Origin: Aplysia californica
Lineage: Eukaryota
Direction of reading: 5' to 3'
DNA: 64,000 bases
NCBI RefSeq assembly: GCF_000002075.1
Contig: NW_004797413.1
Location: forward strand, 890,549-954,548
Both the position numbers and the translations under genes were made by a program. This document shows positions 2,906 through 49,600 of this stretch, piece by piece. Positions within the stretch are counted from its first letter, which is position 1, and each line of letters opens with the position of its first letter. The notes below the pieces were generated by a model. The model did no database searches and was not told the origin of the DNA. It worked only from the letters and a program-made list of their open reading frames with translations.

Positions 2906-3211
2906 TTATCTGCACGCCAGTGTCTTGACGGTAACGTACTCCTTCTCGGAACAACCCGCACCCATGATTGCTTCTTTAGCTTCTGGTTTCCTGACAATCA
3001 TACAAGCTAGCGTCTGGTCATCGGGTATATGCTGTGCTACTTCCAATTGCAACACGCCAATGTAACAGCCAGCGGACACCTTGCTATGGAGCTCCTTGTT
3101 AAACCTATCGAGAAAACCTGCGTTTGGCGAACTAGGGGCGCCTGACACTGAGGCGAGAACAAGGCTGAGGCTCAGCACTGAGCACAAGACGAAAACTCTC
3201 AAGGAAACCAT
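2906..3211 (-). CDS. Uncharacterised small secreted protein, 101 aa, four Cys in mature chain (copy A)
   Basis: ATG-TAA ORF that is GC-richer than its flanks. It has a hydrophobic signal peptide ending ASVSG|AP and Cys49/70/87/100. A polypyrimidine-AG acceptor lies ~115 nt upstream of the ATG. The frame is preserved in both diverged copies. Confidence 0.72.
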   Translation of the reverse strand: MVSLRVFVLCSVLSLSLVLASVSGAPSSPNAGFLDRFNKELHSKVSAGCYIGVLQLEVAQHIPDDQTLACMIVRKPEAKEAIMGAGCSEKEYVTVKTLACR

Positions 3212-7255: not shown

Positions 7256-7561
7256 ATGGTTTCCTTGAAGGTTTTCGTCTTGTGCTCAGTGCTGAGCCTA
7301 AGCCTTGTTCTCGCCTCAGTGTCAGGCGCCCCTAGTTCGCCAAACGCAGGTTTTCTCGCGAGGTTTAACAAGGAGCTCCATAGCAAGGTGTCCGCTGGCT
7401 GTTACATTGGCGTGTTACAATTGGAAGTAGCACAGCATATACCCGATGACCAGACGCTAGCTTGTATGATTGTCAAGAAACCAGAAGCGAAAGCTGCAAT
7501 CATGGATGCGGGTTGTTCCGAGAAGGAGTACGTTACCGTCAAGACACTGGCGTGCAGATAA
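7256..7561 (+). CDS. Uncharacterised small secreted protein, 101 aa, four Cys in mature chain (copy B)
   Basis: Inverted paralog of 2906-3211 with 5 aa differences (R5K, D35A, R74K, E80A, G84D). Acceptor ccctccccacag ends at 7141; AATAAA at ~7982. Confidence 0.75.
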   Translation: MVSLKVFVLCSVLSLSLVLASVSGAPSSPNAGFLARFNKELHSKVSAGCYIGVLQLEVAQHIPDDQTLACMIVKKPEAKAAIMDAGCSEKEYVTVKTLACR

Positions 7562-24702: not shown

Positions 24703-27700
24703 GTGTGTACAGTTATAGTGGAATGTATTGTTTACATTTTTTGTGGTCTTTGATTTGTGCAAATATATATACATATATATTTTTTGCGTTCTCCATGAAT
24801 CTCAAAGGTGCTCATGTGTAAATCAAATGGAATGTATGCATGAATTGTTTTATCAAAGCTTTAATGATGGAATGTATGGATTTCATCACTGCTCTCTAGT
24901 CGATGTCTTTTGTCCGCTGAACTCCCTTCATTGACAAAAAGATGGGTGTGGGAAAACAATGAGCAGGCTGCACCAATATAATCCATATTTAACTTTAAAA
25001 TTAAAAGTAGGGCCCCCAAAATATCGTCCTGTAGACTTCAATTGGCCCACAGGCTGCGAATTTGATACCCCTGGTGTAAAAGGAGGAGCGAGGAAGGAGA
25101 GTTGGTTGTGTTGTTCACAGGTTGAGTGTAGCAGAATCTTTTGACTGATTGATTTGTGTACTGATTGAAATTGTTATATTTAGTTTGTGTGGTTGAGATC
25201 TGGTTTAGACATATCCTAGCACTGTTGACCAATAATGAAAGTTTTTCTTTACTACCGACTTAAATGCATTCTTCATCATCATGTGACGATTTGGATGGTT
25301 TGTCGCTTTTTTTCAAATTCTGCGCTCAGTCTTCTATTTTTATTGACTGATCTGACTCAGACTGTATTAATTGAGATTTGGTGAGAGAGATAGAGAGGGA
25401 GGAGGAGGAGAGAAGGAGAAGGGGAGAGAGAGAGAGGGATGGAAAGGGAAAAAGAATAGATATATTTATATAACCTTGATGATTTTCTAAACAGCTATGA
25501 GTGGAATTGTATGTTCACTTTACAAGTGTAAGTCACAAAATACTCCAACTAAAGCTACTCACAATGTGCGACATACGACTGAGCAAGGTTACTTGAAGAT
25601 TTTTCTGCATAGCTATACATAAATGTTCCAAATGAGAGTTCCCTTTTCTCAATAATCATATCAAAACAGTATTTTGTTGAAGTTTATTTGGGGTTACATA
25701 AACTCATGGTCCGTATGCATAAATTTAGTGCTCGAGTAAAGGACTCAAGTTAATACCACGATTGTTTTAAATCTCCGATAAGAGGACAGTTCAGGGTAAT
25801 GTGGATTGTGTTTGTGGGTGAGGAAAAGTGGGGTGGGGGCGGGGAGATAGAAAGCTGGCACTGTTTTTCAGAATGACACATATCACGTATGATTTATTGT
25901 GTAAGTGTCATAGACTCCATCTGTTTGTGTTTGTGTTAGTTTCCTGATGATCTTCTGCCATGTTGGAAACATCTTGAGTCTCAGCTCTGTGTGTGTGTGT
26001 GTGTGTGTGCCTGAATCATGAACAGGGTGTTGTGTGTTTGGTTCAACCAAAGACTGTACATTACTTATACAATTTTTTCAGTTGCTTTTGTCTGAAATTC
26101 TTTGGCTTCAGAGGTGTCCCAAAAAATGTGAATCTCCTCGCTGTTGCAAAGTTCACCATTTGATCACAAAGAAAATGCGAGTCATCTGTGTTTTCATTTT
26201 AAAGCGTTTGGTGCAGTTTATAAGATAGCACACTCATGCTCCGTGATAGCGACTGCTAGAAATAGAATGATGTGTAGGTTTGGAAATGTTTTAATTTGAA
26301 CTTTGTTGTGATTCTCTTGTAACTTTTCTCGTATAACTTCTGCTACGAAGCGAACACTTTGTGTAACTTGTAAACTTTGTGTGTTTGGAAGTGTGAGGGA
26401 TGGTTTGCAAAAATGGCTTCATCGTGATTGCTCAATGAAGGTGCTCGGGGGGTACAGTACTATATAGACCTTGTGTTTTTGAGTTCTTTATCTCTTGGTA
26501 TTTCTCTATAAATGACTTGGATTTGACATACTGTGTTTGATTTCTCATTTTGTTGTTTAGTTTTAGTAGAGCAACTGCGTAAGGTCATTTGAGCGCCAAA
26601 CATTTTGTTGTGAATTGCTTGCGCTGACATTAGTCCGTTTAAGACATATATAGTTTGTTTACCCACTGCATAAAAACAAGGAAAAAACCCGAAAACAATT
26701 AAACTTTATTCCGCCAGGCACTCGGAGACTGTGACATAAGGAAGTTGGGGTTGAAAAAGTGGCCACGTAAATTAAAGGATTTATGGTTGTAATGACTAGA
26801 CGTGAGTATATTTTTTTGTGTATGGAGAAAAATTTGAAACTGATTTACTCTATCAACACATAGATCCATAAGACTTGACAAGTGGCCATCTCACAGGAGA
26901 ACCTGTATGGGCCAACAGAGGAACTGAGCAGGACGGCCCAGTACAATGTGATAGATACTGGTCTTCAAGTGTGATGCGATCAAGAAGAAGAAGAAGAGAA
27001 TTATTTTTAGTTTACAAAAGTAACTAATTGAGCAAAGTGCTAGACTTGTAGTATGGATGTGCACTCTCTGAGATCTACTCAGTCTTTGTTGGGACCCAGT
27101 CTATCATTTTGAGGAAAGGATGGCTATTTTTAGAAAAATTCTATAGTTCATTTTTGTTTACGCTTTGCTGTGACAATCCAATAGTGGTAATAGTTCCATG
27201 GAGCCTAAGACAAAAATAACATTTCCTGCAAACAAATTTAATCAGTGTTTGGGAAAATATTCCACTAACACAAATGACAAACACAGGCTATGCGTTTTAG
27301 ACATTATCATTTTTATTATCTTTCTTATAATAAACCACTCTTGCAGGAAAACCTACGGTACTTGAATACCCATGAACTGGGTGATAAAATAAAACAATTC
27401 ACCGGGATGAATAGTGAAATATGACGAAGATGGTAAAAAGTGTGATTTTTATATTTTACTTTTATGAAACCAAAACAATTTGTCTTGTATTATGGAATTC
27501 AAAAAGAGAGAAACAAATTTTAGCCCCTCTTTAACTCTTTTTGTACTTTGCTTTCTCACCTGAAGTCAGAATTGCTGAAAGCAAAGTCTGATGTACTGGT
27601 GTATATTAATGAAACAGTTAAATGTCTTGAAAGTGAGTCCTATTTTCATCAACAATGTTCCCACAATTTCAAAGACCTTTCTTTTTTTCTTGGCAAGAAA

Positions 27701-28390
27701 AACTGGCACAGTTCCTTGCTCCGTGTAAGTATTGTTATGTCCCATAGTCACAGATCTACGCACAGATTGAGTTGAGCAAGGGCCTTGGTCACATTCATTA
27801 GTCGTTGTAAAGTATTGTTCCCCTGAGACAAATGAAATTTATGAGATAGGGAATTTTTCATGTACAAAGTAGGAAACAGAATAGAAGATATAATGTATGT
27901 ATACTTACCAACACATCTATTCAAAAAACAGCTTAAAAGCTTGGTTAAGCCCTCGTACACATATGCACTTAAGCATTTATGCTCACATATGCACTCATAT
28001 ATACATCATGGCATTCCCTATGATAAAAGTTATACAGAGAGACAGAAATGTAAAAATTGTAGAAGTTTTACACCCCCATCAGGATAATTCATGGCCAACC
28101 CGGGCTTGGAGCAATTTAGCATCCCGAAAGACATAATATATATATGGAGATATTCGATAAAAACTCCTCACATGGGAATCAAACTCACATCTTCAGCATG
28201 TAAAAACAGGAAAATGCCTCACCATTACCCCACGGATGCTGGTATGGTACGGTAGACAACATGGCATTGTTGAAAAGAATAAAAGAAAAAAAGTCGACCA
28301 ACCAAAATAAAGGAATAAAACCTGGATAGAAAATCTCTAGAGTGAGAATCATCATCCAGGCAAGTGAGATCTTTCTGTGTTTGGACATTT

Positions 28391-28466
28391 CTCTCCTATA
28401 GGCACATCCAGAAGCAGACATCGGAACTTGATTTCATCTGCTTCTATCATAAACAGGACAGAAAAG
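28391..28466 (-). promoter_or_regulatory. Eukaryotic SECIS element (type II) in the SelL 3' UTR
   Basis: RNA: CUUUUCUGU CCUGUUU A UGAU AGAAGCAGAU G AA AUC AAGUUCC GAU GUCUGCUUCU GGAU GUGCCU AUAGGAGAG. It has a 9-bp helix I, an AUGAU/GGAU kink-turn core, a 10-bp helix II, unpaired apical AA and a mini-stem. It lies ~760 nt after the stop codon. Folded by eye. Confidence 0.9.
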
Positions 28467-29226
28467 TCAGGGGAAATTTGAAAGTAACAATATTTGACTA
28501 GTAAGTAGGCAAAAGGAAGGTTGCCTAATTTTAAAAAATGTAATGCATTTATTTTTCTCATTTTTGAAAATGGAAAGAGTCCACATTTGGATCTATTATG
28601 GGAAAATAAATATTAACCCTATCCATACGTCGTGTTTTACTATTGCATCCATAAGACGTGGGGAGCTCTGTGCCACCACTTTCCAAAGAGGATATTTACT
28701 CGTTAATCCGATCCATACACTCTGCATAGCAGTCTGTCAAAATGATTTTTTGAAAAACACTTAAAGTTTCAAAGAGATCTTCGTACTAAAAGTAGTAGAA
28801 GTATTCTAAAATGTGAAGACGGGGTACAAAACGACCCCAGGGCATACGGATAGGGTTAGGGTACATTCGTAGAAAGACAGTGAACTACGAGAGTGACAAT
28901 GAAAAATCTGGCTAATTCAAAGAAAATCAGGCAGTCTCCCCATTTTTGGTTTCAGTGGACTTCACTGTTCCTTGGTATTGAAAAAAAAAATAAATAGAGC
29001 ACTCAACGTTGTGAAGGATATTGGCTGTACAAGTAAGCATGCTCTTTTTATGAATGGATCGAAGAAACATTTTAAAGATATATGTTGAAGAATGACATCT
29101 GTTTTTTCTGAAACAAGATCGAAATCTGTCAATTCATCTCCACTTACAGCTTCATCATCGTTACAGTCAAATTTTCCCATGCACAAACACATAAAACACA
29201 CACACAGAAAATCAGATACTAAGACA

Positions 29227-32200
29227 CTACTTGTCTTGTGTTTGAACTTTGCTTGTGGAAGGAAGAGAATCTGGGTCATTGACTGTCATGGCCGCCAGTA
29301 GTTGATCCACCGATGGGCGATCAGACGAGGTTTTGCTCGGGTATGACAGTTTGATCACACCCTGGCGGTCTAGGACAAAGTCTCCACCCATCTGAAAGTG
29401 AAAAGGCATAACAGCTGTGGTACATGATAATGGCAGGTAAAAATGAGATACTTGACAGGAAAAGCTAAAAATAGTTTTATATGCCAGAGCCTCTTTTGTT
29501 GTAAATTCTCTGTCATGATATAAACTATAATAAACCACTAGTTACAACAAATATTTCAAATAGATGTAAAAAAAACAACCCAAAAACCAGTGACTGAATT
29601 CCAGAATGACTGGAGTAGACTGGCCAATCTGGTTAAATATTAACACTTTGCCCCCCACACCGGACGCCAATCGGCGTGAGCAATAAGTCATCTCTTTCTC
29701 CCACTGGACACCGTAGGCGACAGTAATAATATAGCAAAAAAGCCCCTGGCATAATCGGATTGTTTTGAGAGAAGTGTGTTGTTCACTTCCTCTGTTTTGT
29801 CATATCACCGATGGAAACATTATGAGGCCTTACAGGTGTTGAGCTCAACAATACAAAGTCCAACTTGCTGTAACAACCACTTGTCCAAGACAATCATCTA
29901 CAAATAACCACTTTCCAAATTGATTTTTTTTTTAATTATAAGAACACTGTCCAAGATGTTCATCTGTCTAAGACAACCAAACACTTTTCTCCTCCACAGT
30001 TGGAGGCTGTCTTCAACAATTTAGACTAATACCATACGGTACCTAAAAGATCAAGGGGAAAACCGTGTGGAACATGGAGAAGAATTACAGAAATTGATGT
30101 ACAAAAAAGTAGGAAGACATGGAATAACATCAAGAGGCTAGCCTAAGAGAGAGAAAGGTGGAAAGTGTTTGTCCGTGGCATTTAACTCATTCGCTACGCC
30201 GAGCCGTGGGGGGCGGCACGGCTAGAGTGCCGTCAGTATGCTAAGCCGCCCCCGGCGGCTCGAGAACCGACGTTCAATTTGAGCTTGGTTTCTATTCCAA
30301 TCCACATATCCATGTTAAAATAAAGGTCACAATATAAAGTTGACTTCCGGGTCAAGCGTTTCCATCGAAAATCGGAAGTTTTGATTCAGTTTTGAAACAC
30401 GATTTCGAAGTTTATGCGACATTGTTTTATCGCGAAGCCCAAATTATAGCCCAGACACCAGTCTTAGTACTTTTACACAACAAAATGTATCATTATTTTG
30501 CCCACTAAAGAAATGTAGGACTCTTCTTTATAATATTGATACTACTGGACTCAAATTGCCAGTGCACTGTAATTGAGAAATCAATATTTTTGAATGCTAG
30601 ATCTAGGCCTAGATCTAAATAGTCAAAATATTTTTTCTCCCCAAAATCACTATTTTTTGTGAATTTACTCAAAAAGTACCACCCTAGACATGTATAGGTT
30701 TATTCCAAATACAATTCTGGATAATTCCATATAAGATACAAGTGTTTTTTTCTGCTTAGGATCCTTTTTTCAAAATTATTTTAAAAATTATTTTTTTTTC
30801 AATATCGGAGGTTATGATCCAAATGTACAAATATTATGGAATGTATGTAAATAACTGCTCATTTTTCAATATTTTCCTGTTCTATATACAGTTATGGTTA
30901 TTTTGATGTATCATTTGACTAGGTGCAAACATATTTTTTGAGTTTCATCTGAGATTATAAATTTTTTGTTTTCAAATTTTATCCGCAGCCAATCACAATT
31001 GTGTTGCATAATCGCCTCTTACAGGAACCAAAGTTGAAAAATACACAAATAAATAATGCAGATGTATTCTACAAACCATACTAAAAATGTTGGTATATAA
31101 TATGTTGATATTTATTTGAATTTATGACCCCCAAGACCTGTGAACTGCGCACTAGTCATCATCTCATTTCGCCCTCCCGAAAAAAATTCGTCCACAAGCC
31201 GAAAATAATACGTAGCGAATGAGTTAACTTGATGCAGGGTGAGAAAGGCAATATGATGATGATGACCATACTTAGGTGTAAGCTTACCTGCTGGGGATCA
31301 TCATGAACATTTTCAAAGGGTTTGGGCAGTTCCCGACCAGCCACAAGTTGTTCAGCGTAGTAGACCATGCATGCAATGCTCCACACCTGAGGGGGCGAGA
31401 GATCAGAGACCGTTAGAAACTACCAATCAAAGACCAAGTGAGAACTGTTGATCAGAGATCATGTGAGAGAACAAGAGATCATAGATCATAGACCACCATG
31501 TGAGAAATTGTAGATCCCAAGAAACTAAATTCAGAGAGAGAAGGGGGAGGAGGAGTTCCAATTTATGTATTTTCCATGTCATAAAAAACTTTAGGATTTT
31601 TGTTTCTAATTTAGAGAAAGAATTTTGAAGAGCAGTGTCCACATTTCAACATATATACAGTAACACTGTCGCAGTGTTGATGGCTGAGGTAAATCTGTGA
31701 ACCTCTCAGTGTGTAGACCTGTCCATAGTTAAAACTGTTGTCATTTACACAACAAAAATTATCTTGCTTGGCTAGTTTTGTCTTGGGGGAGGGGGGGGGG
31801 GATGAGAGGTGGGACTGGGAACAAGTGCATGCAGATGACAGTCATTTTTAAAAAAGTGATGGGAATATATACATAGTTGAATTTTTTCAAGATGGCCACC
31901 CATTGTTGAGGCAAAAAGTAGTTGCCTAAGACTGGTAGACGGCTTGCACTGTGCCATCATAATACAGAAAAAAACACAGATGGGAAAGTGGGAAGCAGTT
32001 ATTTGTACAGGTCTTAGGCAGGTGGTCATAAGAGCAGACTCAACTTATCTGATTTAAAAGATGTAACAAAGACATCATTCCTTGAATCTGGTGAATAAAG
32101 ACTTAGCTTATTTGAGTACTTACTTTATAAACAGATCTACTTAAACCGAATGCTTGATATATCTGAGGACATACAAGAAAAACTAAATTAAAAAACATTT

Positions 32201-35200
32201 AAGCAATTGGAGCTTTACATTTTATCTTTCTCTGCTTTCAGAAATGCTTTTCTAACCATTATACTGTAAGCACATTAACTTAATTAACTTAAGCACCTTC
32301 TTAGTAGAAATGCTCTGACAAGTGAGATTTATGATCCTTATCTTTATTAAAGCACCACAAAAACAAGTACAATAAAATATGTAGCTGTCCGTTAAATCAT
32401 AAAATAGAAGAAAAGAAAAAACTGACCACATTTCTGTGGAGTCTGGAGGGTGCGCTGAGCTTCCGGACTCAGTATTTTGGGAAGTTTGTTCCTAATTTTC
32501 ACACATTTCTAATGTTCTATATATCTAGTATCTTTATTTTACAGCCTATGATAATGCATTCTACCTTCCCAACCCTTCCCCCCATCCCTTTCCCCTTCTT
32601 TCTCAGGAAAAATCAATCTATCATCTAGTTCTTTTCCAAGAATAAAAATGGTCATAAGAGTGGTGACATTCATTTTCTCCATAAACAGCCAACTTACCGT
32701 CCTCTTGCCATCCAAAACCATGTCATACGGACACTGCGTTTCTTCCAGCCATTTCAGAGCTCCATGACGCTCTCCAAAAGACACCATCAAAATTCTGCCT
32801 CCGGCTTCTGAGATTTCTGCCTGTATGAACAAAAAAAAAGAATGAACTCCACAGTTTCCTACTGTAAGAAAGGCCTGATAAAAAAACTGAGAACACAAAG
32901 TTCTTCTGTAGAAAAGGTCTGGTTATTATAGAATGAAAACATCGCCAAAACAGCCACAGCTAAGACAGAAAAGGAATTTCTCTTGTACCTATTGATCACT
33001 AGACAGAGCAAAGATTTGGTCTCCTGACAACTGCCATAACATTGGGAAATCTATGCTTTTTTTAAAAAGATATTATATACATGAAAAGAAAAACTAAACC
33101 TGTTAGCAAACAGAAAGTCAAACATAGACTTGGAACAGGGAAACATACAGTTGAACCTGCTTTAACTTCTAATCTCCCGCAAGCCGCTCCCAGCAGCACA
33201 CGGTTGGAACCGGTCGGAACCGCCGTGCCGACGAGCCGCTGACAAGGCTGAGAGAACTATCAAAATAGGTCGACTTGTTTTGATTTAATGACCCAATTAG
33301 TGATGTTTTGTGTCATTTTTAGATTTAGTACCAAATAAGGGCCCCGGCGTTGTAGGTTTACCCCCCTCTCAGATAAAGAGTTAATAACCACCTGTCCCTG
33401 ACCTGTACATACAACCACTTCCCATTCCTGCCTCATGTGTTTTTTACATTATATTGTCACTATCCAAGAAGGAAAAGAAATCAAATGAGGTAGTGCTTGA
33501 TGAAGCCCACGTGGGACGCTCAATGTTAAAAACAATCAGGAAACGACAAATGCAGTTTTTGGGACACATAAATAGACATAAGGGTCTTGAACATCTAGCT
33601 CTCACTGGCAAAACTGAGGGCAAGCAAGGCAGGGGTAGGCCCAGAACAACATACTTAGGGAACCTAAACAAATGGGTAACAGGGAAAGATCAGGTAAATG
33701 TAGCTTTTTTGAGAGCATCCGAGTAAAGGAAGGAATGGAGAACCATGATTGCCGATGTCTGTCGCAGATTTGGCACTGGATGATGATGATCCAAGAAGAC
33801 CACCTGTCTACGATGACCACTTTTCTCTTCGACAATGGGTGGTTGCCTTAGACACAAGTTCTACTTTTGTTTGTTTTAGTAAGGTTTTACGGCGCTGGCA
33901 ACTGCATACGGTCATATGAGCGCCAAGGGGTGGATGTCAACAGAGAAGTCTAAATGGGGAATCAGGCTTACTCAACTGCATAGGCTACAACTTACTCCAA
34001 AAAAAAGATAAAAACCTGGCACGTACACAAAAAACAGAAAACTTAACTGACCTGTCTAGAAACAATTGCACGCACATGGTCTCGTCAGGGCAATCAGGCA
34101 AAGTGTCTCAGCAGCACAAGCACGAGAAACTGCTGATCCATCAAGAAATCCTCAAATGTTGTAGGCAGCTCCGTGCAAGCATTGACCAGGCTGTCTGAGA
34201 TGGGACCCACATCTCCCTCGCGTAACGCAGGGCCCCCTGTTGAAGCAAGACCTTTGTCCACTCCCATGAGAAAGTCATCCCACTCTCGCTGTGAAGTAGA
34301 ATACCAGCACTTAATGAACATAGTCAACATTTCGGGAAGAACATTTAGGAAAACATTTTTTTTATCTCTGTCAACTTTTGGTAACAGGAGCAATGACAAG
34401 AGCATTCTGACTTAATATCCGTTGAACGCACAGAAATTCACAGGAAAAATTAAGTCTGATAAATATAAAAACTGAAGCCAATAATGTGGCAAGTAGCCCT
34501 CAAGCAAACAAAAGCCTATTTGACTGCAATAACATTTGATGAGGATGAAACCTAACAAGTTAACAACCTTCTCTCTTCCAGTATCATAGATCAACACGCG
34601 TACAGTAAAAAAAAATTGAGATAAAAAAATAAAAATGGTGAAAAACAAAAAACAAAACAAAAAAAATTACCTCAACATCAAGAAGCTCATCAAACGCTTC
34701 TCTCATTTTTCCATCTCTGTAAAAGGAAGACTTGTGTTAGAACAGGGAAAAACATCACAGCATAATAATCAATATTAGTAGGAAAAATAGAATTCAGCAA
34801 CAAAAATTACTTACTATTGCGGTACAAAAGGGGAAGTCTGCTAAAAAAAAATTCTTTAAACCACCATGTTTCCCTATTGGATTTCTCTGGTATGGATGCT
34901 TCATGGTTTTATACAATGATGGCTGAAACTTTAAAGACACACCAGCCACTAACTTTTAAAGTATCAAAAACACACAAACAGACAACATTGACCTTTCGTC
35001 ACTGAAATTCATACTCTACTCTATTCTTATATCATAAAAGGCAAGAAAAAAATACCCATAAAGATGAAACGAAATACCTATCCAGAAAGAGATTCCCCCT
35101 CAAAAACAATTAACAAACATATATAAGAAAAAATCAGAGCTTTCATTACAATGACAAAAAGAAGATAAGTTACTAAAGAAACGAACTTGCTACTGGTCTC

Positions 35201-36782
35201 AACAGAAGAACAGCCTAACAACACGAAGAATAACTTTGGCCATATTCGCATCTTGCAAAGTGAGGTTACCAGACAAGGAACTGTTTACATTTTTACATCA
35301 ACAACCACCGGTGTGTTCATGTGGGAGAAGAAGATCGCTTATTACATCAGTGCTTCGCATCTAACAGTACTGAAATAAAGTCAGTGACAGAGCTTCGAGA
35401 TTAAAGATCTTGGGGTGTGTCCAAGAGAAAAAATAAAAATAAATAAATGTGAAATCTCGTTATTTGTGAAATATTTTGTACATGCATGCCATTGTAAGTG
35501 TAAGCAGAAGGTATCTTTAATTTTTCTTTTTTCACTTTGGAAGGGAGGCGTGATTGGACAAAACTGGCATGACTCTAGTTCTGTACATACCTGAAGTGGC
35601 GACTCGCTTTCCTCTCAAATTCATCTTTGGACTTTGCTTCAACCCTGGAAAGACAAAACAATATTTTTTCCCTCACTGATAATAATAATGGGCTCAATTG
35701 CTTCCTCCATCTTCACAGAACATTTCAAAGGAGTTACAAAATGATCAATTGACACTTCAATATACAGAAATAATTATTGTGTTGTCGACACGATGAGCCA
35801 AAACATGTATAAAGCTGAGGTCAACTTCCCAGTTCTATCAAATGAGCAACATCCCTCCCCCTCCCCCCTCACTATCCAATAATTATTACAGAGAAAATCG
35901 AAGTAAAAGAGAAAACACATTTCTAGAAAGACTTACTTTTCAAAGGCTTTTTTGTACAGACCCACAATTCGGAAGAGTTTACCAATCTTCTGAGACACAA
36001 AGTCTTCACTGCTGCCTGCAGATTAGAGAGTGACACAATATGAGGACATGTACAGAGTCATATACTTCTAAATTAAGTAAGTGTTTTACAGCACTTGCAA
36101 CACAAATAGGTCATATAAGTGACGAAAATTAGTGGTATTACTGGACAGTAAGGCGGAGAGATAAGGACCATGAATGTTTGATAGGAAAGAAAGATTGAAC
36201 CACACCAGAGTACCTAATAACCTCCTGTGACCTACAGTAATTATGTACTGAGTCGATATAAGCAGCACTGGCAATAAACTCTCTAAAGAGAGAGTCCCAA
36301 AGTGTTGATTATAAATGATAGGCGATCGTTGCCAAAGTCAATGAATCCATATTAAGTCACTAAAATAATCTTAAATACACATTTCGGGAAATGATATTTT
36401 ATCTTGTGATTGCTGTAGAAAAGTAAAGTACTGCCATGGACAAATGATTTGTACTTCAATTTTGCTGAATATTTATTCAGGCCTAGATCTATATATATCT
36501 TTCATATGAAATTTCCTGCCGACATATTCTTATTCATTATTTCGGAAATTCAGACTTTTATAACAAGCTCCTCATGGTATTTCCACTAAGTAAAAAACAT
36601 CTCTTAAAATTTCTGAATTGTTAGAAAAGCAATAATATGGGTACATGCTAACACTGCATAGTAAAATAAGGCAACTTACTCTGAACATCATTTCTGGCAT
36701 TCCGTATGATCTCCGTGGCAGCATCGGTGACACTCTCTAGAGCAGACAGCAATGCTGCCTGCTTTACCTTGGACAAATCCAT
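29227..36782 (-). CDS. SELENOL: Selenoprotein L (AhpC/thioredoxin-fold protein with UxxU motif), 314 aa, 9 coding exons, two in-frame TGA (Sec) codons
   Basis: Minus-strand exons: 36782-36680, 36015-35937, 35644-35591, 34716-34671, 34288-34052, 32820-32698, 32162-32124, 31386-31288, 29391-29227. All GT-AG, total 945 nt. Protein: MDLSKVKQAA...FVSQKIGKLF...FDELLDVEREWDDFLMGVDKGL...LVLVLLRHFA-U-LP-U-RDHV...GGRILMVSFG...WLEETQCPYDMVLDGKRTIYQAFGL...QMGGDFVLDRQGVIKLSYPSKTSSDRPSVDQLL. These motifs are characteristic of SelL. TGA codons at 34096-34094 and 34087-34085; SECIS in the 3' UTR. Confidence 0.93.
30186..31223. mobile_element. Non-autonomous TTAA-targeting DNA transposon (piggyBac-like)
   Basis: TTAA|CTCATTCGCTACG ... 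CGTAGCGAATGAG|TTAA: perfect 13-bp TIRs with TTAA on both sides. Confidence 0.85.
33450..33790 (+). mobile_element. RTE-clade LINE 3' fragment
   Basis: Translation KSNEVVL...IRKRQMQFLGHINR...GKTEGKQGRGRPRTTYL...WRTMIADV, followed by a (TGA)n tail. Related fragments at ~48560-48680 and at ~30040-30185 plus 31228-31266. Confidence 0.85.
34052..34288 (-). CDS. SELENOL: SelL exon 5 carrying the UxxU motif (Sec159, Sec162)
   Basis: Acceptor tcacag|CGA at 34288, donor CAG|gtcagt at 34052. The 237-nt exon is phase 0/0 and reads ...AGA CAC TTT GCC TGA TTG CCC TGA CGA GAC CAT GTG... Confidence 0.92.
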
Positions 36783-37216: not shown

Positions 37217-38935
37217 AGGCTATTGTTAGGGGACCGTACGCCCCAATAGCGCTTGGCGCTAGGGGACCGTACGCCCCCATAGTGTTTGGCGCTAGGGGAC
37301 CGTATGCCCTACCTGCGCTAAGGCATGGTGTTACGGGACCATACACAGATATGCACGCATCTGGACTTTGTGCAAAAATACTGGAGGAAAACGGCCAGTT
37401 TAATGAAGCTCCTGACGTAAGGAGTTATTACAAGGAGAATGTTTAAAATATCTGAATACGATTGTGAGGTATCCGTTGCAGTGGGTGAACCAGAATTTGA
37501 AATTTGCTCACGTCTGCACCCACGTTGTTGCTATATATGTCAGTAAAAGAAATCAAAGAGAGAGGGAGAGAAAGAGAGNNNNNNNNNNNNNNNNNNNNNN
37601 NNNNNNNNNNNNNNNNNNNNNNNNNNNNNNNNNNNNNNNNNNNNNNNNNNNNNNNNNNNNNNNNNNNNNNNNNNNNNNNNNNNNNNNNNNNNNNNNNNNN
37701 NNNNNNNNNNNNNNNNNNNNNNNNNNNNNNNNNNNNNNNNNNNNNNTGTGTGAAAAACAGACAGAAAGGAAGTGAGAAAGAAAGAAAGAAAGTAAGAAAG
37801 TAAGAAGGAGCGGGAGAGAGAGAGAGGGAGACAAAGTGTGAGTATGTGTGTTTGTGTGTGTGTGTGTCTGTGTGTTAAAGAGAGAGAGAGAGAGAGAGAT
37901 GAGAGGGGGGGGGCTTGAGAAAAAGAGAGAGATAAATAGATTTACACAAAGGAAATGTTTCGGAGAAAAATGAGTAGGATAATAGTGTGTGTGTTCAGGC
38001 GCATTCTGCGGGCAGACATGAGTACATTTTAAAGCTTTGCGACCTGAAATAAATAGGCCCCTAAGCCCCATTTAATGACGCTCGTAAACGCCAGAAAATT
38101 ACTCACTTTTGCATGAGAGAACACGCCTGAGCACGCATTCAGTCTTGATAGCGCGCAAGACGCAAGATCAACTCACATTCAGTAACAATAACAATAACAT
38201 GAAAAGAAAGGAAAAAGAAGACAGCTTGGAAAAAGTAGATAAAAAGCAAAGCAAACTTGACAGAACGACGGGTCGTGAACTAAGCACAGACGAATTAAAG
38301 TTTATTTGCAAGCGCATTACATATAATATTACACGCCTGTCCATATTAATTTAATAAAACAACGTTAGTATAACTGGACTACTTTTGCGCGCAGGTGTAG
38401 TGTAACTATAGTGCGGTCAAAAATTCGTGGCGCAACTTTTCCTCAAATATCTCTTTAACGGGAGCAAAGTCACCCATACTTTGCACAGCAGTTGGTATTA
38501 AAATTTTTTAAAACTGAATCATATTTTTCCTCAACAATTGAGGCTCGATCAAAAAAATGTTCTTCATAAATGTATATAAAATACTAGGCATATAAATCTC
38601 CATCACGCGAAAAATGTGATTGTTCATAGCACTTCCCGCTTCTCGCACACATTTTACGCATGGCCTACGTCATAGCTACTGGATACCTCACAATCTTATT
38701 CAGATATTTAAACATTCTCCTAGTAATAATTCCTTACGTCAGGAGCTTCGTTAAACTGGCCGTTTTCCTCCAGTATTTTTGCAAAGTCCAGATGCATGCA
38801 TATCTGTGTACGGTCCCGTAACACCACGCCTTAGCGCAGGGAGGACATACGGTCCCCTAGCGCCAAACGCTATAGGGGCGTACGGTCCCCTAGCGCCAAA
38901 TGCTATTGGGGTGTACGGTCCCCTAACAATAGCCT
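37217..38935. mobile_element. Non-autonomous PIF/Harbinger-like transposon with ~260-bp TIRs
   Basis: TAA|AGGCTATTGTTAGGGGACCGTAC... and ...GTACGGTCCCCTAACAATAGCCT|TAA: 3-bp TAA TSD. The long inverted arms (37217-~37475 and ~38681-38935) contain 33-bp subterminal repeats. Confidence 0.85.
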
Positions 38936-38944
38936 TAAATAAAA

Positions 38945-39543
38945 GGAAGAGGCTAGCCGTACTTAATGACGGCTAGACTGGCAGTCTAGCCGTACTTAAG
39001 TACGGCTAGACTCACAGTCTAGCCGTACTTATTCTTAATATGATGGCTAGACTGACCATTTACAAAAAATAGGCCTACTGAATTGTAAATATACATTTTT
39101 AGTGTGCAGTACCTAAAGTATTTGTATTTGAGACAAAACCAGGTTCCTTAATGACAGTGCATGTATTTTAAACCTCCTGTTTTCTAATGTAAATAGGGCC
39201 TAAGATAAGTACGGCTAGACTGGCAGTCTAGCCGTACTTAAGTACGGGTAGACAGCCAGGCTAGCCGTACTTAAGGACGGCTAGACTGTCAGGCTAGCCG
39301 TACTTAATATTGATGGCTGAATTGTAAATGAAAATTTTAGTTTGCAATGCCTAAAGTATTTGTATTTCAGACAAAACCAAAACGTGCCTTACTGACTTGC
39401 ATGTATTTGAACCTGAATAATTACTAGATCTAGATCTAATGAGACCTGTGTACTTAACAGGCTTGAGTCGATTGGGCCAAACCTAGATCTAAGTATGGCT
39501 AGACTGGCAGTCTAGCCGTACTTAAGTACGGCTAGCCACTTCG
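38945..39543. mobile_element. MULE (Mutator)-like MITE, copy 1
   Basis: Ends GGAAGAGGCTAGCCGTACTTAA / TTAAGTACGGCTAGCCACTTCG. 9-bp TSD taaataaaa at 38936-38944 and 39544-39552. Many internal palindromic CTAGCCGTACTTAAGTACGGCTAG units. Confidence 0.9.
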
Positions 39544-41458: not shown

Positions 41459-42093
41459 GGAAGAGGCTAGCCGTACTTAATGACGGCTAGACTGGCAGTC
41501 TAGCCGTACACTTAAGTACGGCTAGACTCTCAGTCTAGCCGTACTTATTCTTAATATGATGGCTAGACTGACCATTTAACAAAAAATAGGCCTACTGAAT
41601 TGTAAATATACTTTTTTAGTGTGCAGTACCTAAAGTATTTGTATTTGAGACGAAACCAGGTGCCTAAATGACAGTGCATGTATTTTAAACCTCCTGTTTT
41701 CTAATGTTAATAGGGCCTAAGATAAGTACGGCTAGACTGGCAGTCTAGCCGTACTTAAGTACGGGTAGACAGCCAGGCTAGCCGTACTTAAGGACGGCTA
41801 GACTGTCAGGCTAGCCGTACTTAATATTGATGGCTAAATTGTAAATGAAATTTTTAGTTTGCAATGTCTAAAGTATTTGTATTTCAGACAAAACAAAAAG
41901 GTGCCTTACTGACTTGCATGTATTTGAACCTGAATAATTACTAGATCTAGATCTAATGAGACCTGTGTACTTAACAGGCTTGAGTCGATAGGGCCAAACC
42001 TAGATCTAAGTACGGCTAGACTTGCAGTCTAGCCGTACTTAAGTACGGCTAGACTCTCAGTCTAGCCGTACTTAAGTACGGCTAGCCACTTCG
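41459..42093. mobile_element. MULE (Mutator)-like MITE, copy 2
   Basis: Near-identical to 38945-39543 and in the same orientation, with its own 9-bp TSD atataatat at 41450-41458 and 42094-42102. Confidence 0.9.
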
Positions 42094-43618
42094 ATATAAT
42101 ATATGCCCTCAGTTATGATAGTGATAGTTTAAATCATAGATTAGCCTAAACAGTTAATATTAATATTTTCCCTGATTATCAGCATAGGTGTGTTGCATTG
42201 CTGCTGATATTCAGTGATGTGTACCCTTTTTTCTGTCTCAACACTCAACTTTGGCTTTGGCAATGCAACTTAAAGTAGACTGAACAGGAATGTTTTGACA
42301 ACCGAGGATAAAAGGCTTTAAGGGGTGACTGTACAAGTTGGCAAATCACAAGTTCAGTTATAAAGAAATATACCAGTACAACAGATATTATATAATCATA
42401 TGGAAAGAAAAACAAGCCAACTTGATAGATTGTATGACTTTTATAAAACAATGCAAAAAATTCCAAACCTTGAAATTTAACATCATGGTCAAAGCCTAGA
42501 AAAGTAAGCAAAATGAAATTGAATTGACATAAAACTGACCAATTTTTTTCAGCTAACATCAATAATTTCACCTTTATTTTGTTATTGATTGTCTCCAGCA
42601 GCCCAATATAATCCTTTCTTTTCTTGTGTGAAAGTTTTCAAATTACTCGGAATACATTTATTATATAATCCAGGTTTTGTGGGGCAATGGTAGCTTTTTG
42701 CGCCTGGAAGGACTAGGCTAGATTAGAACTAAAACCCCCTTGAAACAAAAGAGATCCAGTCTCATCAAGATCATAGATTTCAAATATGATGTTTCTATTT
42801 CAGTTGCAGACAATATCCCTGATCAACAATTGAAATTGAATTATAAATGCCATACATTTGTTGTATATAAATTATAAAGTCCTGAGTTAGAATCAGCTGA
42901 TTTGATGCCATAATTCATACATCATATAAGAAGGTCACTTGTTGACTCTATTTATGCCACACATCACATGTAGTGAAGGGGTTAATAACTTTGCTGCTTT
43001 GAGCACTCACACAGAGTAAATGTGGCCTTTTAAAAAACTTGTACACAATGTCTAAGGCTGACACTAACTTCCTGCTGGCAATAACTATGTGCTGGAGCAC
43101 CCTAAATAGCTGAGTGGGTTAAGATTGAGTGCAACCTAGTTTGTCTTGCAATCACTAACTTGCCTTGGACATTTTTTCTGTGTGAAACGTTGAAGTTAAG
43201 CCCAAATTCAATTCAAACATACACTTTTGACACCTTTGTTTTGAAAGATGATAGTGTTTCCAAACTTTTTCTATGGTATCTGTTTTCTCAAAATGACTTT
43301 TACTAATTTTCAGCTGTAATATACTCCCTTTGTTTTAGTTTTCGAAAATTTGGAAAAGATTTTGGGATAAAATCCTCAGGGATTTGGAAATAGAAAAAAA
43401 AGCTCACTTTTGTAAAATAACAATGGCATTTTAGACTTAATGGGATTTTAGATGGCCCTATAGGTTACAAATCATTGAGCAAGTGTTTTGTTCCTGTGTG
43501 CTGTTGGCATCGCTGACCGATTATTACGCCACAGCGCCAGAAGAGAGAGAGAGTAAATGATCGTTCACGTTCTTTTTTCTTGTCCCCTTTTGTGCAGCCT
43601 TAGTGGGATATTGACTGC

Positions 43619-46600
43619 ATGAATCCCCAACGGAGCTCAACGACTTCTGTAGGTGTGGACAGCTCTCCCACGGAGAGGACCGGACTAATGAGTAACCTGA
43701 CAGGCGGGGAGTGGGCGGGGGAGAGTGGGAACTTCTCTCCGGTCCGCCGCTACTCTGCCGCGGACGATGAGGCCACGACGGTGCCAGAGGTACAGCAGGC
43801 TGTGTGTGTGTTCGTGCGTGTGTTGGTGGGGGGGGGGGGGGGTGGGTTGTTTGTTCGTGTGTGTGTTTCTGTGGGTGGGTGTACGCATGCGTGTGTGTGT
43901 GTTGCATCTCAGCTCAGTGTCTGCTTATCCTTCACGTTGACTGTTTCATTTACTTTTTGATCTAGTATTTTTTATTTAGAATTGTTTGATTACACTACTA
44001 TTTTTCCCATTATGTTCTGTTCTCACAACTGGCAGTCCCTTCTTTTAAATTGTTTCCTTTTACTCTACTCTTCCTATTCATTCTCCCTTTTCACTTTTTT
44101 GGTATACATTTCGACTCAAAACCAAAGAGCTAATCTTATAAGAATCTTTTCTTTCTCTTTTTTTGTTTGTTTGTTCCACATACGAGAACTCAAGGGTAGT
44201 GAACTGTAGGTTATTCAACACCCAATGAAGCTGATTTTTGTATGTATAATAACGTGCTTTTTTTTCTCAAATCAAGAGGGTTTTATCGTTCCGCTGTCAG
44301 ACCGCAGTTTTTGAAGATGCTTTTTAAAGATGGGTATTCGTGCTGATGAGAGTCTCTGCAGTTTTATAAGACCTATTTTTTTATAAGTTCTGTGAAACTT
44401 AAAAAACTTTTTTTTAAACTAAGGTGGGGGGGTCAAAGTTTGTATTTGTATTTTAACAAGTAATTCTCCCCCCTCCCTCTTTCATCCCCCTGCTTCAGAC
44501 ATCAGTGGTGACCCCCTCGACCAACAGCACAACAAACCAGCAGCCGCAAAGTCAGAGAACGCGGCGCGGCGAAGGGTCTCAAAATAGATCTGACGGTGAT
44601 GGAGCGGCGGCCACCCGTGGTGGCGGTGCCCAGCCAGCTGCTGCTGCGAGGCAGGAGGCGGGGAGAGGGAGCGGAGAGGCGGTGTCGGGGCAGCAGGAAG
44701 AGGAGGACGACGGGGAAGAGACGCTTCTGTACGGGGCCAAGCACGTCATCATGCTGTTTGTCCCCGTCACGCTGTGTATGGTGGTGGTGGTCGCGACCAT
44801 CAGTTCCATCACGTACTACACCACGAAGGGAACCTATTTGTAAGTTGTTCACGCCGCGCTAGCTCTGGCCCTTTTTTTTTCTTTTTTCCTTCTCTGCTGC
44901 AGAAGTCGCTATCTGTTTTTGTTTTTTTTCTTCCATACTTTAGTTATCTTGTCTTTTAACTTGATAATAGTTGGGTTATGCGTGTGTATTTCTTGTCTGT
45001 ACATTCCATACCACAACAAAGTTGGGTTATTGTGGTGTATATTTCCTGTCAGTACATTCTTTTCCATATTAAGAGTTGGGCTGTGTATGTGTGTCTTCTC
45101 CATGTGTGCAAGCTAAAAAAAAACTTTTGGGACAAGAGTTGGGTTATGTGTGTGTATTTCCCCAGCATGTACAAGTGTTGGGTTATTTGTGTGTATACTG
45201 TATTTCCCCAGTCTGTACAAGTGTTGGGTTATTTGTGTGTATACTGTATTTCCCCAGTCTGTACAAGTGTTGGGTTATGTGTGTGTATTTCCCCAGTCTG
45301 TACAAGTGTTGGGTTATGTGTGTGTATTTCCCCAGTCTGTACAAGTGTTGGGTTATGTGTGTGTATTTCCCCAGCCTGTACAAGTGTTTGGTTATGTGTG
45401 TGTATACTGTATTTCCCCAGTCTGTACAAAGAGTTGGGTTATGTATGTGTATACTGTATTTCCCCAGTCTGTACAAGTGTTGGGTTATGTGTGTGTATAC
45501 TGTATTTCCGCAGTCTGTACACCCCATTCCATGACAAGTGTTAGGTAATGTGTGTGTATTTTCGCTGTCTGTACACAAGTTGGGTTATGTGTGTGTATAC
45601 TGTATTTCTCCAGCCTGTACTAGTGTTAGGTTATGTGTGTGTATTTCCGCAGCCTGTACACAAGTTGGCTTATGTGTGAGCATTTCCGCAGTCTGTACAA
45701 GTGTTAGGTTATGTGTGTGTATTTCCGCAGCCTGTACACACGTGTTGGGTTATGTGTGTGTATTTCCGCAGTCTGTTCCACTGTTGTACCTCTGTTTCAT
45801 GACTTTATGTTGGGTTATGTATGTGTATACTGTATTTCCCCGGCGTGTACACAAGTTGGGTTATGTATGTGTATACTGTATTTCCCCGCGACCAAGCTGT
45901 GGCAGTCTATGGCTTTATGTTGGGTTATATATGTGTATACTGTATTTCCCCAGTCTGTACACAAGTTGGGTTATGTGTATGTATACTGTATTTCCCCGCG
46001 ACCAAGCTGTGGCAGTCTATGGCTTTCTGTTGGGTTATGTGTGTGTATACTGTATTTCCGCAGCCTGTACACCCCGTTCCACGACAAGACGGAAGACACC
46101 GGGACCAAGCTGTGGCAGTCTATGGCCAACGCCCTCATCCTGCTGGGCGCTATCATCGTCATGACCATCGTTCTCCTGCTCCTCTACAAGTACGAGTGCT
46201 ACAAGGTCAGGAACAAACTATAAATAGAAACAGCAAATTGTTTTTCGTTCTCCTGCCCCTCTACAAGTATGAGTGCTACAATAGTTCTTTTTTTTTTTCC
46301 TATGAAACATCTGTTTTCCTTATCTCTCTCCTCCTTCTTTTCTTTGTATGTTACTCTCTAGTAACAGATCTAATCTTTCATCTGTGGCACTTATGTGATC
46401 TCACTCTGTTGCAAGTGCTGATCTTATTTAGTTCACAGGTATAAACTGCTTTTAAATGTAAAAAACTCCAAAGAACTTGTTGACTTAAGAAAAAGCATAT
46501 TTCGTGTTTGTGTGTGTGTGCATGTGTGTACGTGGTGAAACACCAAACCAATGTGCGAGGGTCTGGACAATAAAGAGGTATCTTATCTTATCAGGTATGG

Positions 46601-49600
46601 CAACTCCATAGATAGGCGTGGCCTGGTTTATCGTAAATTTGGATTTAAAAGCCACTGAGCTTAGTACCGTTGTTTATTATGGGTTGTTGTTTTTTTATCC
46701 CTTTGAGGTGGAGAATGTTCACAACAGTTCTACTGAATATGAGTTTTTAAATTCCAATTTTGTAGTGGAATAGGTGTATTAATAGACCTTAACAATTCAT
46801 TGGAAGTAAAGTGTAGGTTTAAACTTTTTACTTTTTATTCTTTTTTTTATTATATAGTCCTTTGCAGTAACATTTGAAATTAATTTGTACCGTATTGAAG
46901 GCATTTATGAGGTCTATCTTCTCTGACTAGTATTTTCAATATTTGCATACTCTGAATATTTTGGTGGCCCCCTTGTATATGAATATGTTTGTGGGTGGTT
47001 GGCGGGTGCTTTGGTATGGTTTGCTCCTTCTTTCCAATCAAACATCTATCGTCCTTTTTCTCTCCTCCTTCTTTTTTGTGTTTGTTACTCTCTTGTAACA
47101 CATCTCTTCTTCGACACGTATATGACCTTATTGTGTTGCAAGTGCCGCAAAACTCTTACAAAATCTAATAATACAGGGCGCTGCACAGTGGCGACCGACA
47201 GTGGCATTGTTTGTAAACTGTTCTGTATTTGTGTAATAGTGTGTATTTATGTATGTATTTACACATGTGTGTATTTATGTATGTACGTGTTTATATTTAT
47301 GTATTTATGTATGTATGTTTGCCATTGTAAAACAAAGTGCCCTTCTGGGACAAACAAAAGTGTAATTTATTTTTATTATTATTATTATTTATAAATATGC
47401 TTTGTTTTGTTGGTTTCCTCAGATCATCAATGGGTGGCTCGTGATGTCTTCAGTGATGCTGCTGTTTTTCTTTTCCTACATATATCTTGAGTGAGTATGC
47501 ACGGATACGAATACGAGTTGCTGTTTAGTTAAGTGATTGTAACAGGAAATGTCCTTTCAACATGAGGAAAATCTTGGTAGCAGTCAAAATGTGGGTGGTT
47601 GGCGGGTGCTCTGATGTGGTTTGCTTTTTCTTTTCTTCTTTCCTTTCAAACATCTATCGTCCTTATCTCCCCTTCTCCTTTTTTTATGTTTGTTACTCTC
47701 TTGTAACACCTCTAATCTCCTGGCGCTCATATGAACTTATGCTGTAAAACCTCCACTAAAACTTTTTTTAAATTGTTTCTGATGGCACCCGTTTTCAAAG
47801 AGCTAAGTGGCTGTCTTAGACAGGTGGCCATCTTACACAGTGTCATTATGTTGTAAAAAAAAATGTAAGTTGGGAAATGGGAAGTGACTGTTTGATTTGT
47901 AGGTGTTTGACTTATACTGGTGGCCGTTGGACTGTATCTGTAAAAAAAAAATGCATTTGATAAGTCCTACTCTTCCAAGAGATATATAATTTGTATTGCT
48001 ATTGGCTATAAGTTCATGCAGGCCGTCTCATTTTTCTTCGATCATCCACCATTGCTTCAGAGGACAATTTTGGTTAATTTGGAAGTGGTTCTTTTTAAGA
48101 CCTTGAAATTTTGAGGACAAAAGTAATTTTATGTCATTTGATAAAATTGTTTCACAAAGATCTTTGTCTCTCATCACTTTTCCTTTTCTCTTTTTCTTTT
48201 TGTCCTTGAACTGTCAAGGGATTCAATATGTTTTGAAATATTGTCTGTGGCTTCAAGTTATTTTATTCAATTCTCTCTAGAAATCATTCATTAACCCTTT
48301 AATTTAGCAGGTGGCTGGAAGAGACCACTGACAGATCCTAATTTTTTTCCCCCTCTGTTGTCTCTGTCTGTCCCTTTTGTTTTTTCCCTGCACAAAATGA
48401 CAGTTATTGCGTCTCCATGCTTCTCTTTACACAAAAAAAAAACCCCAAAAGAAACAAAATTTGCATTTGGTAACCCTCTCTTCGGATGTAATTGCATGTG
48501 GATGCTCTTCTGTGCTATTGCATGATAAAGGTTCAGTTTTAAGTGAAGTAAATAAAACTTACGGGTGTCAGGGAAAGATCAGGATAACGTGGCTTTTCTA
48601 AAAGCATCTGAGCAAAGGAATGAATGGCGAACCATTATAACCGATGTCTGTTACAGATCTGGCACTTGAAGACGATGGGGAAAAAAACAACCCCAACCCT
48701 GTGAACTTTCATGCCCTTTTTTATTTGCAGACAAATTCTACGTGCCTACAACGTCCCGATGGACTATATCACAGTGGCTATCATCATGTGGAACTTTGGC
48801 GTGGGGGGCCTGTTCTGCATCCACTGGAAGGGGCCGCTACTCCTGCAGCAGGCGTACCTCATCAGCATCAGCGCGCTGGTGGCCCTCATGTTCATCAAGT
48901 TTCTGCCGGACTGGACGACATGGGCCGTGCTGGGCGTCATGGTGGTGTGGGGTGAGGACCAAAGACTGCTGTCTTCTTTATATCAGAGGATAGGATAAAC
49001 TTTTGTGTCACTTTACAGGCTAATCTCCCTATATGTTGGAGCATTCTCTGTCAGAGGACAGGATAAACTCTCTGTCACAGAATAGGATAAATTCTTTACC
49101 AATGAATAGGATCAACGTTACGTCACATGATAGGATAAACTCTTTATGAACAGATAAGATAAACTCTTTATCAAGGGATAGGATAAACTCTATATCAAAG
49201 GATAGGAAAAACTGAACATCAGAGTATAGGATAATCTTTATTTCATGTTGTAGTATAAACTCTTTGTCAACGGATAGGATGAACTCTATGTCATAGGACG
49301 GGATAAAGTCTGTGTCATGTTGCATTAGAGGAAAGAATAACTCTAATAAAGTCAAAGCTCAAAAGGCTTGAACTGGTAGTTCCTTGTCTTCTTTTTAGCA
49401 ATGCTTATTCACACCAAATTTGTACTCGGATGAAATGCTTAAATTACTTTGTTGAGTGTACCCACCGATTTACAGATAGGGGTATTCTACTGATTATCAG
49501 CCAAAGCTCAGTTTGAGGATTAAGTTTGAATCACTTTCTGTGTTACCATGCATTGTGAAGTTATTACACAGTTATTTCCCTTGTAAATAAGTGTTTGTTT

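Follow-up and report, generated by a model that had tools for sequence, protein, structure and literature searches.

A probable type II SECIS element downstream of a two-UGA selenoprotein L gene in Aplysia californica

Selenoprotein L (SelL) and its single SECIS element were reportedly described by Shchedrina and colleagues in 2007. The protein contains two selenocysteine (Sec) residues two positions apart, and both are inserted with a single SECIS (PMC3316567). It has also been documented that SelL forms a diselenide bond and occurs in fish, invertebrates and marine bacteria (PMC2397514, PMC13134290), and invertebrate SelL genes have been catalogued (PMC3473315). The structure rules of SECIS elements include a UGAN/KGAW core with tandem G.A pairs (PMC3753652). 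Our literature search found no paper on an Aplysia SelL gene. Here we analysed a hairpin in a 64-kb stretch of Aplysia californica DNA, which we call the window, and compared it with these systems. The results indicate that the hairpin is very probably the single SECIS of the A. californica SelL mRNA, serving both UGA159 and UGA162.

The SelL gene lies on the minus strand of the window; its nine coding exons extend from 36782 to 29227 and are bordered throughout by AG/GT (Table 1). We joined the spliced model for the frame and distance checks, and homology searches were performed exon by exon or through database protein identifiers. The joined frame comprises 314 codons followed by TAG, and its sole interruptions are TGAs at codons 159 and 162, within the motif RHFA-U-L-P-U-RDH (U159-L-P-U162). 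PF13911 matched exon 6 with an E value of 0.0064, a match that falls short of the cut-off when the exon stands alone, and was also found on P0019 and P0025, the identical database proteins; the sequence of P0019 equals the C-terminal 130 residues of the window SelL. Exons 6, 8 and 9 are 100% identical to A. californica XP_035825281.1, an uncharacterised protein of 136 residues (LOC118477121), and UPI00065BB38C contains exons 6-9 as modelled. The short exon 7 is absent from the former and present in the latter, pointing to exon skipping or a difference between models. When the N-terminal half of a relative was used as query in one search, this locus alone was found in the genome. The RefSeq model spans only the half of SelL behind the UGAs and is listed as an uncharacterised protein, so the main use of the present analysis is to correct this annotation.

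Table 1. Positions of the features discussed, numbered along the window.
Feature	Position	Strand	Remark
Putative type II SECIS including helix I and its extension	28388..28464	minus	Model match 28392-28460
SECIS core, 5' side, A-UGAU	28446..28450	minus
SECIS core, 3' side, GGAU	28406..28409	minus	Fits KGAW; tandem G.A pairs with UGA
Helix II	28410..28445	minus	28445-28436 with 28419-28410; apical part lies within the span
Apical G-A-A	28435-28433	minus
Mini-stem AUC/GAU	28432-28430 with 28422-28420	minus	Closes a 7-nt loop
Helix I, favoured register UCCUGU/AUAGGA	28394..28458	minus	28458-28453 with 28399-28394
AATAAA, possible proximal polyadenylation signal	28548..28553	minus	98 nt upstream of the SECIS AUGA
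MITE with TTAA-CCCT ends (piggyBac-like)	28613..28859		247 bp; terminal inverted repeats of about 21 nt
SelL coding exon 1	36680..36782	minus	Inferred ATG at 36782; matches the N-termini of P0001 and P0006
SelL coding exon 2	35937..36015	minus
SelL coding exon 3	35591..35644	minus
SelL coding exon 4	34671..34716	minus
SelL coding exon 5	34052..34288	minus	U-L-P-U motif; TGAs at 34096-34094 and 34087-34085
SelL coding exon 6	32698..32820	minus	AhpC/TSA thioredoxin-like fold (weak Pfam match alone)
SelL coding exon 7	32124..32162	minus	39 nt
SelL coding exon 8	31288..31386	minus
SelL last coding exon	29227..29391	minus	TAG at 29229-29227; 100% identity to XP_035825281.1 residues 83-136

Several other features were observed in the window. 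Presenilin-like exons lie on the plus strand at 43600-55400, divergent from SelL with its ATG at 36782, and tandem repeat arrays occupy introns at about 45000-46200 and 53300-54250. A repeat of about 600 bp with short inverted units is present upstream of the SelL start in two near-identical copies (38945-39540 and 41460-42000), and inverted repeats of about 200 bp, some 1.3 kb apart (37240-37440 and 38720-38910), are possibly the ends of one element. An inverted pair of near-identical 101-codon frames, at 2906-3211 on the minus strand and 7256-7561 on the plus strand, encodes a small protein that has four cysteines and whose start resembles a signal peptide.

On the minus strand, the hairpin region (28466-28391) begins with CUUUUCUGU and ends with AUAGGAGAG. 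An earlier note on this DNA had described a core AUGAU...GGAU with tandem G.A pairs and a fully paired 10-bp helix II, and both were present. Helix II is formed by AGAAGCAGAU/GUCUGCUUCU, with 10 of 10 positions paired, one of them as U-G, and pair probabilities of 0.97-1.0. The apical G-AA was found as that note had given it, and the AUC/GAU mini-stem lies where it had been placed, with a probability of 0.58-0.67. The core belongs to the UGAN/KGAW class as UGAU/GGAU, and its AUGA and GA are invariant across nine aligned elements. Helix II is followed by G-A-A-A in the window element, and two apical A columns are invariant in the alignment of SelL elements. The third apical A is also invariant among the relatives, and just 3 of 9 have it paired; the mini-stem may therefore be no longer than 2 bp here. 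Most relatives keep its UC/GA pairs and three of nine its A-U pair, which places the element in type II, weakly. The top pair of the quartet is able to form U-G instead of a non-standard pair, and this counts against the assignment.

The hairpin lies on the same strand as the Sec codons, downstream of them by more than the minimum of 51-111 nt. The strand and the distance of about 760 nt from the stop codon had been claimed correctly: the stop is 760 nt from 28466 and 776 nt from the A of AUGA. In the spliced model the AUGA follows the two UGAs by 1244 and 1235 nt, and these distances fall within the published mammalian UGA-SECIS range of 207-5207 nt (PMC3316567).

The helix I proposed earlier did not hold up. 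Its register can be drawn with nine pairs, three of them G-U, but its pair probability is about 0. We rejected it in favour of UCCUGU/AUAGGA with a 5-bp extension, which has a probability of 0.94-1.0 and keeps this value when the core is constrained to be unpaired. The Rfam alignment also backs this register. Among the relatives, 68.5% of cells were paired in UCCUGU/AUAGGA, compared with 53.1% in the rejected register, which is about the level of shuffled sequences.

We assessed how far the hairpin exceeds chance. Its folding z score was -4.8, and none of 200 shuffles was equally stable. A strict SECIS pattern (RUGA, 11-12 nt, AA, 10/10 pairs, GA) gave one match across both strands of the window, and it occurred in 4 of 5000 simulated UTRs (0.08%). 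The comparison with Rfam was divided: SECIS_1 (RF00031) was the best match in 6 kb and the best of 4227 families, covering 28394-28458 with an E value of 0.0067, but its score of 30.0 bits is under the gathering cut-off of 35. This cut-off is a database threshold and not a biological criterion. The SelL SECIS of one relative scored 30.3 bits in Rfam, likewise below the cut-off, and the elements of four other relatives missed E 1. A genome-wide RF00031 search returned no matches and missed the window element itself, and is therefore uninformative.

A covariance model was built from the elements of eight relatives, with the window left out. It matched the window element with 49.4 bits and an E value of 3e-9, and the next match in the window reached 15.6 bits; the model searches of the window covered 1-30700 and 30860-64000. 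In the 927-Mb genome, the element was the sole match of this model among the scored candidates. No second SECIS was found in the UTR or introns, no other model match in the window exceeding 16 bits. A GUGA candidate at 26167, with 8 of 10 pairs, had no model match and was rejected. The earlier proposal that one element decodes two UGAs agrees with the single model match in window and genome, but the arrangement is not new, because it has already been published for the SelL family (PMC3316567). Judged from sequence, the hairpin appears to carry every testable feature of a type II SECIS, the Rfam score threshold excepted.

We then examined related loci. A search with the stretch of exon 5 that precedes the first TGA found 14 proteins, 13 of which terminate in LRHFA, where the first UGA lies. 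The remaining one, isoform P0008 of Apostichopus japonicus, ends in LRHSQ and is probably a model or splice variant that departs from the frame just before the UGA. The in-frame TGA-xx-TGA was present in all 11 animal loci fetched, and synonymous sites vary. The named relatives include 'selenoprotein l' of Plakobranchus (GFO25969.1 and GFO25968.1), which matched exon by exon with 45-88% identity; the SelL of Callorhinchus was reached from the C-terminal half of a close relative. Plakobranchus, Patella and Mactra share with the window an intron located 33 nt past the second UGA. A metagenome scan yielded four GC-rich loci that are probably bacterial; no close animal transcript was among its results. 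The GC-rich loci L023:1232 and L024:2648 are probably bacterial AhpC/TSA kin, with RH-x-x-U-x-x-C motifs containing one UGA.

One SECIS was found in each of the 10 relatives' loci with enough 3' sequence, 21-334 nt after the stop codon. In this set of ten, L008 and L014 carry an identical element and L027 and L028 were counted once. Outside the set, L013 ends 41 nt past the stop. Seven of the ten are intron-free contigs that hold coding sequence and element together, and we took them as transcripts. RNAalifold, applied to nine aligned elements, returned exactly helix II unprompted. In this alignment 91% of helix II cells were paired, and both-sided changes occurred in 9 of 10 pairs, although the pairing is partly selected, as a SECIS-like pattern had been used to choose the relatives' elements initially. 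The covariation score was 0.785; shuffles gave 0.29, and slid registers did not exceed 0.27. The whole structure beat all 500 shuffles on four of five measures and also stood far above slid controls. As regards the window, the test with the relatives-only covariance model is independent of the pattern selection. Moreover, the SECIS was the only significant block common to the Aplysia UTR and the UTRs of relatives, with 77% over 56 nt in the case of L007. The earlier argument that the SECIS supports reading TGA as Sec was borne out by the type II SECIS downstream of SelL and by the retention of both TGAs and the SECIS in related loci.

The sequence around the UGAs was also compared. The base after the second UGA (window 34084, minus strand) is C in 11 of 11 aligned SelL sequences. 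A purine after UGA favours termination, and the C may fit selection against a purine at this site. The Arg after the second UGA is encoded by CGN in 10 of 10 cases, and the Arg that precedes the first UGA by four codons is encoded by AGR in 7 of 11 (one-sided Fisher p about 0.003, calculated by hand and ignoring relatedness). No conserved stem-loop adjoining the UGAs, that is, no Sec redefinition element, was predicted.

The genome contains a tRNA-Sec gene with a UCA anticodon (79 bits), a multi-exon SepSecS and eEFSec domain III. By analogy with the pathway known from eukaryotes, a kink-turn formed by the tandem G.A core would be bound by SBP2, and SBP2 together with eEFSec-GTP would deliver Sec-tRNA to UGA159. 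The ribosome would add Leu and Pro, and the same SECIS would then serve UGA162. The predicted product is a full-length thioredoxin-fold protein whose U-x-x-U could form a diselenide, as reported for SelL. Failed Sec insertion would lead to a stop at 158 or 161 residues, and the 158-residue piece would be the kind of fragment that databases list for relatives.

The distance between stop and SECIS is longer in Aplysia than in the relatives, in part because a MITE was inserted between the SelL stop and the SECIS; the SECIS itself is outside the MITE. The MITE accounts for about 243 nt of the stop-to-SECIS distance, which would shrink to about 533 nt without it. Other full-length copies of the MITE number at least 39, with 84-88% identity, some with tandemly repeated ends (contig C70).

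The 3' region also bears on how often the mRNA would include the hairpin. Many transcripts might be cleaved at the proximal AATAAA (28553), so that alternative polyadenylation would set the share of full selenoprotein against truncated or degraded message, with the SECIS itself functional. The signal is canonical, CA and a U-rich run stand right behind it, and the next canonical AATAAA, at 27317, is about 1.07 kb beyond the SECIS. In public runs, the share of the words of 28200-29400 that is present amounts to 0.67-0.77, with many runs stopping at 0.70; an mRNA end near 28530 predicts 0.71 ± 0.04, but a longer mRNA with 0.5-1% divergence (0.62-0.85) or absence of the MITE fits equally well, and no record identifies the runs as RNA. 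The chance of an AATAAA in a random stretch of the same length and make-up is 0.40, and none was found between stop and SECIS in the relatives' loci. We consider such cleavage unlikely, and it would be an addition to the reading of the hairpin as the SelL SECIS, not a replacement for it. A further scenario, in which the MITE lengthened the UTR and the proximal AATAAA is now a regulated polyadenylation site whose SECIS-less message switches the two-Sec protein off, for example by tissue or selenium supply, seems to us a long shot. The locus would matter more if the upstream AATAAA were indeed a regulated site that removes the SECIS. The frame is intact, both UGAs are in place and helix II is perfect within an otherwise diverged UTR, all of which speaks for the SECIS being present in a working share of the messages.

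The same observations weigh against the hairpin being a vestige, which would be the case if the Aplysia mRNA always ended before the SECIS, or if the gene were split into two frames as the 136-residue LOC118477121 implies. The RefSeq model does contain only the part after the UGAs, and for Plakobranchus, Patella, Mactra and GCA_048127485.1 (L010, L011, L012 and L016) the annotation breaks SelL at the UGAs into two neighbouring genes. However, gene callers produce this split at every place where they encounter these UGAs, including in intron-free contigs that bear the SECIS. Both TGAs, the frame across them and the shared intron are kept in Plakobranchus, Patella and Mactra, and helix II has remained perfect although the rest of the UTR diverged. 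We regard a vestigial hairpin as very improbable. It is even harder to accept that the hairpin arose by chance or is part of a repeat unrelated to SelL, a reading to which we give practically no credence. The Rfam score under the cut-off and the many false genome-wide matches that SECIS patterns give (PMC3753652) would speak for it, but the element is single copy in the genome and outside the MITE, the strict pattern is rare in simulated UTRs, and the relatives-only model matched it with high significance. This reading has already been refuted, since the hairpin matches in sequence the element at the same place in related SelL loci.

The original observation is thus confirmed except for helix I, and its interpretation is supported and ordinary. 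The Aplysia element provides one more natural SECIS with which to ask how two UGAs three codons apart can be served by a single element, a question that fish SelL already allows to be tested. Compared with type II SECIS elements (RF00031), it shares the AUGA before a UGAN/KGAW core, the 10-bp helix II, the unpaired apical adenines 12 nt after the AUGA, the extra mini-helix and the location 3' of the coding sequence. It differs from them in scoring 30 bits against the cut-off of 35, in its short mini-helix (2-3 bp, probability about 0.6) and in the U-G at the top of the quartet. Like SelL (SELENOL), the locus has two Sec codons two residues apart, a peroxiredoxin-like (AhpC/TSA) fold and one SECIS, and it belongs to an aquatic animal; unlike the ten SelL relatives, it has 776 nt rather than 21-334 nt between stop and SECIS, and an AATAAA ahead of the SECIS. 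As in selenoprotein P, more than one UGA per mRNA would be recoded, but selenoprotein P has two SECIS elements and many UGAs (PMC3316567), whereas Aplysia SelL has one SECIS and two UGAs.
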